Shown here piece after piece: positions 31,184-37,213 of a stretch of 64,000 nt of DNA. The notes under the pieces are model-generated. The model saw only the letters and a list, made by a program, of their open reading frames with translations, made no database searches and was not told the origin of the DNA. Where the stretch lies: contig CM074810.1 in the NCBI GenBank assembly GCA_037447605.1, positions 310,001 to 374,000 of the forward strand, read 5' to 3'. Made by a program: the position numbers and the translations under genes. Within the stretch, counting starts at the first letter, position 1, and each line of letters opens with the position of its first letter. This DNA comes from Zygnema circumcarinatum SAG 698-1b (Eukaryota; Plantae; Zygnematophyceae).

Positions 31184-34100
31184 ATGGCTGAAGTGTTTCC
31201 GGACACTGTGATATATGTTCTCAAAAAGACGGTGCAGCAGTTCGGAGATCATTCGGCGATTATTGTGATGGAAAATGGACCGAAACTAAATTACTTGCAG
31301 CTGCAGGTGCTGCAATTTTTTTCATCAACTTAATTATTTTTCATTTTATTTTTTTACTTTGCTGATGTTTCGTGGAACATTATATGTTCTGTATCTGCTG
31401 ATTCGGTTGTGGTCGCAGTCCTTGCTAAAGCATTTAAGCCTTTAGTCTTAAGCTTCGCCAGAACTTAATATGCTGAGAGGCTTCTGCAGGTCACAAATTG
31501 TCATGTAGTTCAGCCTTAAATAATAATCCCTGTCTCTCTCAATCATATTTAAAACATTTTTCCGTCTCGAAATGTTTTCTATTTCCTGTACTTCGCGTTG
31601 CAAAGAACTAGTTTTCATTTTATCTGCAGTATCTTTATTTTTATTCCTTTTTGCTTTTTTACTGTCGATTCTCACCTCTGCATCGGTTTCAGTATAAATT
31701 TGACATTACTTCCCTTTTTTTTTTCCGGCAGGATTCGGTCGAAGGGCTTGCTGCACAACTAAGGCTCGCCGGTGTACAGCCCGGAGCCTTGGTCACTTTG
31801 GCGTTTCCAAACACTCTGGAGGTGCGTATGTTCTTCCCTTGTCTCCTTTTTTCGTAATGCGCAGCTGCTCACTTGATTACATGGTTTATTTTTCTCATTT
31901 AGCTCCTCCTCCTGCTCATGTGTGGACTCGAACAGGCGCTTTTTTTTTGATGAAGCTTGAGTTCAGCTTCACTTTGCAACTGAAAACGGAGATTAAAGCT
32001 GAAGCCGAAACTGATACTGGAACTGAAACTGAGATAGACCTGAAGACTGAGACTGATGCTGAAGCTAAATTGAGCTTCGCCTTTGTCTCTGGATGTGCAG
32101 TTTGTGATTGGATTTTTAGCAGTAATGCGAGTCCGAGCAGTCGCTGCCCCGCTGAATGCGGCCTACACGGAAGAGGAGTTCTACTTTTACATGGAGGATG
32201 CTCAGTCAACGCTATTGCTGCTTCCAAGTGGCGGCACTTCGGCAGCGGCAGAGGCAGCGGCCGCTCGTCTCGGAATTCCAGTTGCTTCCTTGCAGAAATA
32301 TAAACTCGAGGTATGTTAAAATCGTTTTGGTCCAGACTCAATGGGAGGCGAATGCGATGTTTGTGAGCGTCCGATATTCTTTGTTTTGGTCTGGGGAGGA
32401 GAGTTGAAGTGAGAGGAACGAGAAAGGGGGAGAAGCAGATGAGAGCAAAAACGGAGAGGGGGAAGAGAGAAGGGGTAGGAGAGTAAGAGGACGGGGGAAG
32501 GAAAACTGAGGGAATGATTATAGATATTCCGCCCCGTGAGCTCCTATTCCACCCTTACTCCCTCTCTGCCGTTGCGCTTTCTCCCTTGCTCCCTCCCTTT
32601 CCTCTTTTCCATCCCTTATCTTTTATCTGCAGTTGCTTCCTTGCATATGTCCTGATATATTCATCCCTTTCCTCGCAGTCCGGAGTAATGCTTCAGCCCA
32701 AGGACCGTTTGAAGCTGATGCCGGAAAACGTCCTGCACGAAGGGCCTGGTGCAGGCGGCTATCCGAAACCCTCCGATGTGGCCCTATTTCTCCACACCTC
32801 TGGAACCACCTCCCGCCCAAAAGGGGTCCCTCTAAACCACGCAAACCTCACAACCTCCATACAAAACATTGTCCATACATATCAACTCAGTTCTAAGGAT
32901 CGCAACCTTATTGTGATGCCCCTCTTCCACGTCCATGGCCTACTGGCTGCTCTTCTTTCTACCTTTGGGTCAGGGGGAGCTATCCTTCTGCCTGCCGGAG
33001 GAAAGTTCAGCGCAAGCTCATTCTGGCGAGATATGCACGAAGGCGGGGCGACTTGGTATACTGCAGTTCCCACTATTCACCAGATTCTCCTTGCTCGGCA
33101 TAAAGAAAGGAAAGATATTCCTAGTGGTTCTTCATACCCTTTGCTCCGATTCATTCGGAGCTGCAGTGCGAGTCTCGCTCCTGCCACACTTGAAGGATTG
33201 GAAGCAGCATTCAAAGCACCGGTTCTAGAGGCCTATGCAATGACTGAAGCTTCACATCAGATGTGCTCTAATCCATTGCCAAGTGAGGGGCCCCATAAGG
33301 CGGGTTCTGTAGGGAAGCCAACCGGCATCGAGTTGACTATATTGGATTCGGAGGGGAAGGAATTACCTCCTCATGTGACTGGGGAGATTTGTATAAGGGG
33401 AGGGAATGTGACTGCGGGATATAGGGGGAATCCGGTGGCCAATGAGCAGGCTTTTGCCTTTGGGTGGTTCCATACAGGGGACCAGGGGTTCCTGGACGAG
33501 GAGGGATATTTAACTTTGACGGGTCGAATTAAGGAGCTTATCAACCGCGGAGGTTGGTACATCCTTACCCAATAATTTTTACGGGCACTTTTTCAAAACT
33601 TTGTTGGACAAGGGGCTATGAATGTACATTGCTTTGTGTGAATTTTCGAAAGCTGTTATGTGATGGGAATGATGCAGGAGAGAAGATTTCACCTCTTGAG
33701 GTCGATGCCGCCATTCTCACACATCCGGCGATTTCGGAGGCAGTCGCTTTTGGAGTTCCGGATGCACACTATGGAGAGGAGGTATGTCCTTTCCATAATT
33801 ATGTCTTTAGTGCATTCAGCGATCTTTTTTGTGAGTTGTGTGTGAGAGAGAAAGGGGCCCTGGAGAATGAGATGGAGGACGGGAGAGAGAAAGAGAGGGA
33901 GGGGGAAAGCGCGGAGTTCAAACGATTTTAGGAAGACTGTGAGAGTGGCGAGAGGGTAAGGTAGAGGATGAGAGAGTGGGTGTGGGAGTGGCAGGATGAG
34001 AGGGAGAATGATGGAGAGAGTGAGGGAGAAGCTAAGGAGCAGGATGAAGCATATGGTGGCTGCTGTGCTTAGATCAAACACGGAGCCTTTCAAAGTGAGG

Positions 34101-34399: not shown

Positions 34400-37213
34400 G
34401 TGAGTGCGAGGTAGAGAGAGCAGGAGTGGGACTGAGGACGTTGCATGTGAAGGCCATGTGAAGGCGGGAGAAGTGTAATGCAGGCAATAAAGTGATTAAA
34501 GTGAAGAAGTTCGACTGAAAGTCTCTCTCTCTGTCCCGACCCTCTCTCTCTAGTTTCTGTCTCTTCCCCCCTCCCTTCCCCCCTCCCTCACCCTCGCACT
34601 CCCTCTCCCGCAGCCTCTCTTGCCCTCACACGGCTTCATTCCATACTAAACGATACCCCTCAGCCCCTTTCACTCAATCAGCCCCTCCCAGCTTCTCCAC
34701 CTTCCCATCTACATCTGACACGTGTCAACCCCCAATTGGCTGGCAGCCCGACCTCCAACCGCTCCCCAAGCCCAAGTGGAAGGCAGCGAAGTCGCCGCCA
34801 AAGCCCTCGCAAGGCTCGGAATCCGCCATATGTTTGGAGTCGTCGGAATTCCAGTCACCTCTTTCGCTACCGACTGCCAAAAAGCCGGAATTCGCTTTAT
34901 AGCATTTAGGAATGAGCAAGCTGCGGGATATGCTGCTTCTGCTTGCGGATACTTGACCGGAATTCCGGGATCTCTTCTTACAGTATCGGGCCCCGGATGT
35001 GTCCATGGCCTGGCAGGGCTGAGTGGGTCAATGAGCAACACATGGCCCATGGTGATGGTGGCGGGGGCAAGCGCGCAGGGGGAGACTGGGAAGGGCGACT
35101 TTCAGGAGTTAGACCAGATGGAGGCTGTGAAGCCCTTTGTCAAATACGCAGGTAATGAGAGGGAAAATGAATTGGCATGGATCTCAAGATGGCGATGCCA
35201 TCACATGTACATGTACAAGGGGAGGAAGGTGTTGCATGCCCAAAACCCATAAGCTCTAAAACCCCTAAACCCTTGTTTGCTGTACAGGGAGAGTAAAAGC
35301 TGTTGCAGATATTCCCAATATAGTTCAGAATGCGGTGCTTTCCGCTGTTTCCGGCCGCCCAGGAGGAACCTACATAGACATTCCGGCTGATATTTTTCAT
35401 TCGAAAGTGGACGAAAAAGAGGCCACAAAGCTTCTGGAGTCTCTCCAGCCCTTCACTCCCACATGGGCTCTCCCACTCAACGCAGCTCCTACCGCCCCTT
35501 CAGCCTCTCCGGCAAAGGTAGAGGAGGCACTCCGCCTCCTCCACAACGCCCAAAAGCCGCTTCTAGTGATTGGAAAGGGAGCTGCATTCGCACATGCAGA
35601 AAAGGCCCTCCTTGAATTTGTAGAAACTACGAGAATTCCCTTCCTTGCTACCCCAATGGGAAAAGGGGTCCTTCCAGATAATCATCATTTATCAGCTTCA
35701 GCTGCACGTTCCTTAGCCCTCTCTCAATCAGACGTAGTTCTGGTTGTGGGAGCTCGCCTTAACTGGATGCTCCATTTTGGAGAGCCTCCTCGGTGGAAAA
35801 AAGAGGTGAAGTTCATATTAGTTGAAATAGAGGAGAAGGAAGTGGAATTGAGGAGGCCGGCTGTAGGGCTGGTGGGAGATGCGAGAGCCATTGTCGAGCA
35901 GCTGAATGAAGCCCTACGGTCAGGAGGTTTGAAGCTTGAAGAGACTCATCCATGGCTGGAAGCTATCAAGGTTGGGATCGCTTGCTCTTACCCACTTGTC
36001 AAATTTCTTTACTTTTGTAACTTGAAGGGTCTGCAGCTTGAGATGTCTTATGTGAATCGAGACCTCGCCAGAGGGGAGAGAGAGAGAAAGTGTGTGTGTA
36101 GGAGAGGGAGGGAGAGAGAGAGAGGGGACGAGAGATAGAGAAAGTGAGAGGGAGAGAGAGAGGTAGCGAGAGAGAGAGGGAGGGGAAGGGAGATTGAGAG
36201 AAACACTACCAAAAGCCAAAAATCACTGACTCTCCCAGCTCCCACCTGCCTTGCAGAGCAAAGTCGCAGCGAACACTGACAAACTCCGCGCCTCTTTGGC
36301 CAAAGACGTCGTCCCGATGAACTTCCAGTGCGCTCTCCGCATCGTCCGAGATGCGATCTCAGCCGTCGGATCTCCCACTCCCATATTGGTCTCGGAGGGA
36401 GCCAATACTATGGACATCGGGCGCACTGTGTTGGAGCAGATGGAGCCGCGCACCCGCCTGGATGCGGGGACATGGGGGACCATGGGGGTGGGCATGGGCT
36501 ATGCCATAGCCGCCGCTGTCACACAGCCCCATAGGCTCGTGGTAGCGGTAGAGGGAGACTCGGCATTTGGGTTCAGCGGCATGGAGGTGGAGGTGAGGAA
36601 CATCTCTCCGCCCCCCTCCTCTCTCCCTCCTCTCCCCCCCTCTCTCTCTCTCTCTCTCTCTCTCTCTCTCTCTCTCTCTCTCTCTCTCTCTCTCTCTCTC
36701 TCTCTCTCTCTCTCTCTCTCTCTCTCTCTCTCTCTCTCTCTCTCTCTGTGTGTCGCTCTCTTCTCTATCGCCTCGAGTTTCTCTCGCCCCTCTCCTATTT
36801 TCGTCTCTCCCTCTTGCCCACCTGGTCTTCCCCCCCCACCCCTCGTTACCCTCTTCCCCCTCTCCCTCTAACACCTTTCCCCCCCTTTCAATATGCAGAC
36901 AATCTGTCGTTACGACCTACCCATCATCATCATAGTCATGAATAATGGAGGAGTGTATGGTGGAGATCGCAGAGGCCATGTAGACATCCCTGAGCCCATA
37001 CATAAGGACCCCCCTCCCACCTCCTTTGTTCCAAATGCAAGATATGAACTCATAATGGAAGCCTTTGGGGGGAAGGGTTACTCAGTAGCGACTCCACTGG
37101 AGCTTACTTTGGCCTTGGAGGAATCCTTCTCCAAGAGAAAACCTGCTCTGATCAACGTGAGCATAGATCCGTTCGCTGGAACGGAGAGCGGAGGGCAGGG
37201 ACATAGAAACTGA
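31184..37213 (+). CDS. AAE3-OXC: Predicted bifunctional oxalate-CoA ligase / oxalyl-CoA decarboxylase fusion, ~1120 aa; exons 31184-31306, 31732-31821, 32101-32310, 32679-33552, 33678-33781, 34177-34399, 34747-35151, 35288-35970, 36257-36592, 36899-37213
   Basis: The ten GT-AG exons sum to 3363 nt (1121 codons) in one frame. The phase-1 donor CAG|GTGAGT at 34400 joins the phase-1 acceptor GCAG|CC at 34746. The OXC half has no in-frame ATG before its conserved region. Confidence 0.78.
34747..37213 (+). CDS. OXC: Oxalyl-CoA decarboxylase / 2-hydroxyacyl-CoA lyase (TPP enzyme) portion
   Basis: Motifs: HMFGVVGIPVT, FRNEQAAGYAASACGYLTG, TVSGPGCVHGLAGL, GDFQELDQ, RLDAGTWGTMGVGMGYAIAAA. TPP motif VEGDSAFGFSGMEVE...IVMNNGGVYGG. 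C-terminus DPFAGTESGGQGHRN resembles the end of plant OXC/HACL. Confidence 0.93.

Follow-up and report, generated by a model that had tools for sequence, protein, structure and literature searches.

The closest described counterparts of the gene reported here are AAE3 (structure 5ie0), an oxalyl-coenzyme A (CoA) synthetase, and the oxalyl-CoA decarboxylase (OXC) AtOXC (At5g17380), both from Arabidopsis, where they are encoded by two genes and made as two polypeptides. According to PMC8004701, both enzymes are cytosolic and OXC takes the AAE3 product directly as its substrate. The same paper reports that AtOXC behaves as a dimer, that oxalyl-CoA builds up when OXC is knocked down, and that two T-DNA lines yielded no null allele, a result that stands under a section heading on embryonic lethality. 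PMC8905533 describes the Lathyrus oxalyl-CoA synthetase as a monomer. The window analysed here is a stretch of 64,000 nucleotides from the zygnematophycean alga Zygnema circumcarinatum SAG 698-1b (assembly GCA_037447605.1, contig CM074810.1, positions 310,001 to 374,000 of the forward strand). Its positions 31184-37213 (+ strand) very probably form one gene, whose ten exons encode a 1120-residue enzyme of two modules, an AAE3-type ligase followed by a decarboxylase of the OXC/2-hydroxyacyl-CoA lyase (HACL) family, with a flexible linker between them and both activities predicted by homology. It shares with the Arabidopsis pair the protein families, the catalytic motifs, the order of reactions and an -H(R/K)N end without peroxisomal targeting signal type 1 (PTS1). 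However, what is two polypeptides in Arabidopsis is one in the window. An earlier note, made from the sequence of this stretch, had proposed one gene, one mRNA and one polypeptide with complete AAE3 and OXC parts. This proposal is borne out by the joint between the two halves (hereafter the seam), which is spliced in four RNA runs, by the lack of an OXC start, by more than 40 fused orthologues and by a seam intron shared with other species.

The yeast proteins Pcs60 and Pxp1 are both peroxisomal. They pair the same two families within one organism, Pcs60 (8aff) being the third-best solved match to the AAE3 half and Pxp1 a homologue of OXC/HACL. However, they are separate proteins, whereas the window encodes a single protein without PTS1. 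In the bacterial frc/oxc system, oxalyl-CoA is made by formyl-CoA transferase and not by an ATP-dependent ligase, and the two enzymes are again separate proteins. The OXC of Oxalobacter formigenes (2c31) carries out the same thiamine diphosphate (ThDP)-dependent decarboxylation of oxalyl-CoA and matches exon 8 of the window gene with an E value of 1e-42. PMC2776528 notes the association of oxc with frc in bacteria.

Together the ten exons comprise 3363 nt, or 1121 codons (1120 residues and a stop) without internal stop, and all introns are of the GT..AG type. The start ATG at 31184 is the first after an in-frame upstream stop, and orthologues align from residue 1. The AAE3 frame runs to ...EESAAA just before the seam donor CAG/GTGAGT (the slash marks the splice point), whose last exon base is 34399. 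The following exon opens at the acceptor GCAG/CC, with 34747 as its first base. The seam intron (intron 6, 34400-34746) is thus 347 nt long; it lies in phase 1 at codon 542 and contains an in-frame TGA, an AATAAA and a CT-rich tract. The three forward frames were read over 30500-38000. The OXC frame is closed upstream by a TGA at 34716-34718, and its earliest ATG, at 34830, lies inside the conserved ...RHMFGVVGIP block. Since this frame has no usable upstream ATG in the window, the fused reading would be forced even without RNA. The unspliced AAE3 frame reaches a stop 20 codons on, at TGA 34456-34458 in the seam intron, and the AATAAA lies at 34487-34492. On re-reading, every coordinate that the earlier note had given for the seam (phase 1 donor at 34400, acceptor at 34747, OXC frame stop at 34716, first ATG at 34830) proved correct. 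The same is true of its count of ten exons and 1121 codons, and of its remark that no in-frame ATG precedes the HMFGVVGIP block to give the OXC half a start of its own. An OXC-only start at ATG 34830 was considered separately and rejected, because it would remove an N-terminal helix that is conserved and can be aligned throughout the orthologues. A scan of the seam for promoters and terminators of bacterial type, which are irrelevant for a eukaryote, found none.

Ten sequencing runs of the same organism were found; one contains 51% of the sampled words, a share close to that of the exons, and six contain 71-76%. Assembled contigs of four runs (X1 to X4, from three studies) were compared with positions 31200-36600. 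The eight junctions within this interval, the seam included, are present as GT..AG joints in the contigs of all four runs. For the remaining junction, between exons 9 and 10 (36592/36899), the loose contig ends after 36592 match exon 10 over its first 30 bases, again in each of the four. The earlier note had named RNA across 34399/34747 as a check on the fusion, and the spliced joint is indeed there: it was reported as 34395/34743 with a cut of +4, which is equivalent to 34399/34747, and lies well past chance expectation. Its depths in the four runs (27, 362, 380 and 256) are the same as those of the flanking exons. The predicted junction peptide spans ...SEESAAAARPPTAPQ.... Several contigs carry the seam over longer distances. 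A single contig of 3768 nt in X1 extends from upstream of exon 1 into exon 10, one of 2291 nt in X4 spans exons 4-8, and one of 1313 nt in X2 links exon 6 to exons 7 and 8. The intron bins of X1 are at zero depth, which shows that these contigs derive from RNA and not from contaminating DNA. Contig depth climbs toward the 3' end. In X2 it does so by a step between exons 5 and 6, within the AAE3 part and not at the seam, and a 3' bias accounts for this better than a promoter within the gene, at the seam, would.

A contig retaining intron 6 was observed in X3 only, at a depth of 12.6 against about 376 for the spliced form (about 3%), and depth over 34458-34638 is zero in the three other runs. 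Together with the in-frame stop and the AATAAA in the intron, this contig could be taken to mean that the fusion is real but that retention of intron 6, or polyadenylation inside it, acts as a regulated switch yielding stand-alone AAE3 in some conditions. We consider such a switch improbable, because the retained form is at a level ordinary for unspliced pre-mRNA in the single run that has it and at zero in the others, in a comparison of four samples whose contigs lose rare isoforms and cannot show the ends of molecules.

Turning to the protein encoded by this fused gene, database, structure and cluster searches were queried with the exon open reading frames and with the homologues P0006 and P0176. 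In the Pfam scan, exons 4 and 6 carry AMP-binding and AMP-binding_C and exons 7-10 carry TPP_enzyme_N, M and C, each domain scoring above its gathering cut-off. The AAE3 half scores 178.6 bits with PF00501 and 27.4 bits with PF13193, and PF02776, PF00205 and PF02775 are each above cut-off in the OXC half, giving the three-domain TPP_enzyme_N/M/C architecture. Four motifs are invariant across 30 fusions. The AAE3 half carries the P-loop HTSGTTSRPKG (residues 180-190) and the A10 motif PRTATGKIQRR with its catalytic lysine (residues 509-519). The OXC half carries RNEQ, with the cofactor-activating Glu, in its N-domain (residues 596-599) and the ThDP motif EGDSAFGFS...VMNNGG (residues 1003-1034), for both of which the columns are invariant. 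The solved structures nearest to the AAE3 half are oxalyl-CoA synthetases from Lathyrus (6qjz, E value 1e-113), Arabidopsis (5ie0, 9e-110) and yeast (Pcs60, 8aff, 4e-83), the next family (feruloyl/malonyl/4CL) following at 1e-32 or weaker. Those nearest to the OXC half belong to OXC/HACL and not to ALS or PDC (6xn8, 8vz*, 2c31 and 2q27, E values 1e-51 to 1e-41), and glyoxylate carboligase matches at 1e-17 only. Module 1 (residues 1-527) is therefore assigned to the AAE3/Pcs60-type adenylate-forming ligases of the ANL superfamily and is a predicted oxalate-CoA ligase. Module 2 (residues 552-1120) is assigned to the ThDP-dependent OXC/HACL family and is a predicted oxalyl-CoA decarboxylase.

The two modules are separated by a linker of about 24 low-complexity residues (528-551, KNECEGNSEESAAAARPPTAPQAQ), close to the length of about 25 previously estimated for it. 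Its coding sequence (34357-34775) is interrupted by the seam intron. Among the 30 fusions the linker is unalignable and variable in length. The distance between A10 and the GIPVT motif ranges from 38 to 68 residues across species (52 in the window protein), and the middle 10-40 residues of this interval are rich in A, P, S, T and G and cannot be aligned. An AlphaFold2 model was built, with a 30-sequence alignment, for P0176, the closest homologue, which comes from a streptophyte transcriptome. It consists of two confident modules, with block values of the predicted local distance difference test (pLDDT) mostly between 85 and 96. They are joined by a linker (524-553) at pLDDT 30-44 and without secondary structure. 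The predicted template modelling score of 0.58 indicates that, in this P0176 model, the two modules probably have no fixed mutual orientation.

An exhaustive HMMER search with exon 8 was followed by searches with the fused Chlorokybus protein P0006 and with P0176. The first returned stand-alone OXC proteins together with long proteins matching at about 670-940, and Pfam recognised AMP-binding, AMP-binding_C and TPP_N/M/C in these long matches. The searches with the two fused proteins uncovered more than 40 AMP-binding plus TPP_enzyme fusions; the earlier note had suggested a domain-architecture search across algae and bryophytes. All of those listed are full-length and collinear, with 48-64% identity to the window protein. 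The closest (P0176, Calypogeia, Sphagnum and Marchantia, among P0173-P0176) align by BLASTP from residue 1 or 8 to residue 1120 with 62-64% identity. The fusion is found in bryophytes (Sphagnum fallax, Marchantia paleacea and Calypogeia fissa) and in streptophyte algae (Spirogloea, Mesotaenium, several Closterium and Chlorokybus). Among chlorophytes it occurs in Trebouxia, Myrmecia, Coccomyxa, Chlorella, Micractinium, Botryococcus, Chlamydomonas eustigma and strain UWO241, Polytomella, Chloropicon, Ostreobium and Auxenochlorella. It is also present in red algae (three Galdieria species) and in alveolates (Chromera velia and Rhytidocystis). Deposited examples such as those of Sphagnum fallax (BDL97_09G066300), Marchantia paleacea (Mapa_006291), Mesotaenium (ME000129S00316), Spirogloea (SM000001S04631), Chlorokybus (Chrsp75S07584), Coccomyxa sp. 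Obi and Galdieria sulphuraria have the same domain order as the window protein. However, the sequence and length of their linkers differ.

The deposited fusions carry automatic names only ('2-hydroxyacyl-CoA lyase', 'hypothetical protein' and, once, 'probable 2-hydroxyacyl-CoA lyase at C-terminal half'). No match 100% identical to the window protein was found in a set of 5.8 billion proteins, in the fused and single-domain length classes. A full-text literature search, to which most subscription journals are outside coverage, found no paper describing or characterising a natural AAE3-OXC fusion, and the 'fusion' matches that were inspected all proved to be GFP, His or GUS tags. The novelty suspected by the earlier note fails at the level of sequence databases, which already contain such fusions, automatically named, from many algae and bryophytes; a paper describing them was not found. 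The window gene is a well-supported member of an old, conserved fusion that is catalogued but uncharacterised; it is neither a one-off nor a new kind of enzyme.

Some of the proteins retrieved depart from this architecture. Three Closterium models of about 1600-1630 aa (P0002, P0192 and P0202) have some 500 extra residues between TPP_enzyme_M and TPP_enzyme_C. Other Closterium models measure 1147-1239 aa, and the addition may be an unspliced intron in the annotation. The Pfam scan of P0307 (1148 aa, from a Logan/ENA contig) gives an AMP-binding ligase, a PP-binding carrier and a complete OXC/HACL in one protein, and the Pfam families on record for P0309 (1185 aa, also from a Logan/ENA contig) are the same. 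P0236, from the diplonemid Namystynia karyoxenos (920 aa), has a formyltransferase (Formyl_trans_N/C) fused N-terminal to OXC/HACL, which could link formyl-CoA production to one-carbon metabolism. The searches also gave many proteins resembling nonribosomal peptide synthetases (condensation domain, PP-binding and an AAE3-like A domain) from bacteria and metagenomes.

Quick maximum-likelihood trees were built for each half separately, with support from the Shimodaira-Hasegawa-like approximate likelihood ratio test (SH-aLRT) only. In both, the window sequence falls among the streptophytes, in a clade with good support. By its AAE3 half it joins the Zygnematophyceae rows (90% support) and is sister to P0176 (98% SH-aLRT). 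By its OXC half it lies nearest to the Mesotaenium row (69% identity), in a region of that tree that is not resolved. This congruent placement of the two halves suggests that the fused gene has been inherited vertically as a unit, as it appears to be from these trees. Introns were compared after the proteins of Sphagnum fallax and Marchantia paleacea had been mapped to their own loci. The seam intron is in phase 1 in all three species, at codon 542 in the window, 524 in Sphagnum and 525 in Marchantia. The Marchantia intron falls in the same alignment column as that of the window, and the Sphagnum intron two columns off, in an unalignable stretch. Introns 4, 5 and 9 of the window gene are also common to both bryophytes.

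Single-domain proteins of vascular plants nest within the streptophyte fusion clade in both trees (Selaginella, Pteridium and angiosperms for OXC; angiosperms for AAE3). In Selaginella, the neighbours of the OXC gene are F-box and PPR genes, with no AAE3 beside it, and AAE3 is on another scaffold. The nested position of the vascular single genes and the separate Selaginella loci point to a later gene fission, probably on the vascular-plant stem. Two annotations of stand-alone genes were checked, and both are split models of a fused locus. In Klebsormidium nitens (L003:3806-23319), models of 511 aa (AAE3) and 618 aa (OXC) adjoin on the same strand. The 'OXC' model opens with the A10 motif of AAE3, MPRTATGKIQRR, and continues with the linker and OXC in one exon, so that the seam lies inside that exon. 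In Sphagnum jensenii (L004:8001-16064), the AAE3 model extends by a single codon past the seam donor before its stop, and the ATG that opens the OXC model lies two codons before the acceptor. In Chara braunii the AAE3 gene is 42 kb long, and no neighbour is called within 10 kb of it.

The glaucophyte Gloeochaete wittrockiana provides the same two enzymes in one polypeptide but in the opposite order to the window. Its transcript protein P0213 (1127 aa) has the TPP domains at 15-541 and AMP-binding at 609-1098, and ends in -SRL. The reversed domain order points to an independent event, the two enzymes having been joined at least twice, and argues for selection to couple them.

Several points weigh against the reading of the locus as one gene for one bifunctional enzyme. 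The gene is known at the level of DNA and RNA contigs, and the protein product, both activities, channelling and localisation are predictions. The contigs are assembled from short reads and are not single molecules; they prove the junction and not one full-length transcript. In X3, the OXC exons lie in a contig of depth 376 and AAE3 exons 4-6 in one of depth 215, which allows for an additional OXC-only transcript, although 3' bias explains the difference equally well. The structure model is that of a homologue with 64% identity, P0176, and not of the window protein itself. Finally, the OXC/HACL family also contains 2-hydroxyacyl-CoA lyases, and sequence cannot separate the two activities. The fused enzyme might be real but use other substrates, for example by activating a 2-hydroxy acid and cleaving the 2-hydroxyacyl-CoA to formyl-CoA and an aldehyde (the HACL reaction). 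Databases name its orthologues '2-hydroxyacyl-CoA lyase', and HACL/HACS are found besides OXC among the solved structures nearest to the C-terminal half. However, the N-terminal half is nearest by a wide margin to the oxalyl-CoA synthetases 6qjz, 5ie0 and 8aff (1e-113 and 1e-110 for the first two, against 1e-32 for the next family), and the vascular-plant single genes nest within the fused clade in both trees. In addition, the Arabidopsis homologue of the C-terminal half, which is not among the tree rows, decarboxylates AAE3-made oxalyl-CoA according to PMC8004701. A set of substrates other than oxalate and oxalyl-CoA therefore seems unlikely. Weaker still is the proposal of two neighbouring genes joined merely by a read-through (conjoined) transcript, with an AAE3 ending at the intron TGA and a separate OXC: the intronic stop with AATAAA after it, the intron-retaining X3 contig and the two-gene annotations of Sphagnum jensenii and Klebsormidium nitens can be cited for it, but it is highly improbable given an OXC without a start codon of its own, a seam spliced at full exon depth in four runs (the retained form being absent from three and at about 3% in the fourth), the artefactual nature of both split annotations and a frame and phase-1 seam intron kept across streptophytes.

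If the locus is one fused gene, as we favour, its predicted product is a single protein of about 120 kDa. The ligase module would adenylate oxalate (oxalate + ATP to oxalyl-AMP) and then transfer it to CoA as the thioester oxalyl-CoA, which the tethered OXC module would decarboxylate. The fusion would ensure 1:1 stoichiometry and proximity of the two modules, so that free oxalyl-CoA would be kept low and CoA would not be tied up. An oligomer might form through the OXC modules, with one ligase arm per subunit. Channelling of oxalyl-CoA by the fused enzyme is putative.

The window protein ends in ...GHRN and has no PTS1. It resembles in this the other streptophyte fusions and the OXC of vascular plants (-HRN/-HKN); the cloning primer for Arabidopsis OXC, as printed in PMC8004701, decodes to ...QHKN. 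A comparison of C-termini (including P0178, P0181, P0185, P0198, P0203, P0208, P0209, P0189, P0216 and P0222) separates two kinds of ending. The ending is -H(R/K)N or -SHN in the fusions of streptophytes and Galdieria. Those of chlorophytes, Chromera, Rhytidocystis and Gloeochaete have PTS1-like ends (-SKL, -SKM, -SKI, -SKV, -AKL, -AKM, -ANL, -SNL, -SRL and -SAL). Taken by themselves, the C-termini suggest that the enzyme may be peroxisomal in the chlorophyte, alveolate and glaucophyte lineages and cytosolic in streptophytes and Galdieria. The window enzyme is predicted to be cytosolic because it lacks PTS1 and its C-terminus resembles that of the cytosolic Arabidopsis OXC.

A fusion conserved over hundreds of millions of years, with one reinvention in reverse order, constitutes strong and independent 'Rosetta stone' evidence that AAE3 and the plant and algal HACL-like protein catalyse consecutive steps of one pathway, and that their tight coupling is under selection. 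A plausible reason for this coupling is that free oxalyl-CoA ties up CoA. The comparison would also date the gene fission to the vascular-plant lineage, and it exposes a recurrent annotation error, by which some genomes have two gene models in place of the one fused locus. As a ready-made, single-gene module for oxalate removal, the fusion may be of interest for low-oxalate crops and synthetic formyl-CoA metabolism. A broader scenario is put forward tentatively, as a possibility that we hold to be less probable than its opposite. Fused AAE3-OXC might represent the ancestral CoA-dependent oxalate catabolism of green plants, possibly of all Archaeplastida, and an undescribed channelling and CoA-sparing machine that hands oxalyl-CoA from the mobile C-terminal subdomain of AAE3 to the tethered decarboxylase. 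It would have been split in vascular plants, reinvented in reverse in a glaucophyte, and moved from peroxisome to cytosol in streptophytes.

The individual exons, all on the + strand, are as follows. Exon 1 (31184-31306) begins with the start ATG and encodes the N-terminus of the AAE3 half; its junction with exon 2 (31306/31732) is present in the RNA contigs of four runs. Exon 2 (31732-31821), both of whose junctions are seen in RNA contigs, and exon 3 (32101-32310), likewise supported by RNA contigs, continue this half, and the frame was checked in both. Exon 4 (32679-33552) carries the core of the AMP-binding domain (PF00501, E value 2e-52), with the P-loop at 32793-32825. Exon 5 (33678-33781), with RNA contigs and a frame check, includes the hinge and the start of the AAE3 C-terminal subdomain. 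Its flanking introns (phase 1 and phase 0) are those common to Sphagnum and Marchantia. Exon 6 (34177-34399) contains AMP-binding_C (PF13193), the A10 motif at 34300-34332, the last residues with homology to AAE3 (...HFLK) and the beginning of the linker, and its donor 34399/GTGAGT is used in the RNA of all four runs.

Exon 7 (34747-35151), which has no ATG in frame before 34830, encodes the remainder of the linker and TPP_enzyme_N (PF02776, E value 9e-29), with RNEQ at 34908-34919. Exon 8 (35288-35970) corresponds to the middle domain TPP_enzyme_M (PF00205, 1e-34). Exon 9 (36257-36592), supported by Pfam and RNA, carries the first part of TPP_enzyme_C, the ThDP motif GDSAF... starting at 36551. 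Exon 10 (36899-37213) completes this domain (...NNGG) and the C-terminus ...GGQGHRN, and ends with the stop at 37211-37213.

Upstream of the gene, the X1 contig reaches 411 nt beyond 31200. If this extension is collinear with the genome, the 5' leader has an upstream open reading frame of about 38 codons from ATG 30906 (30906-31023). Intron 9 contains a long (CT)n microsatellite (36640-36747), and further CT-rich tracts fill positions 34530-34700, in the 3' half of the seam intron, and 37440-37570, downstream of the gene.

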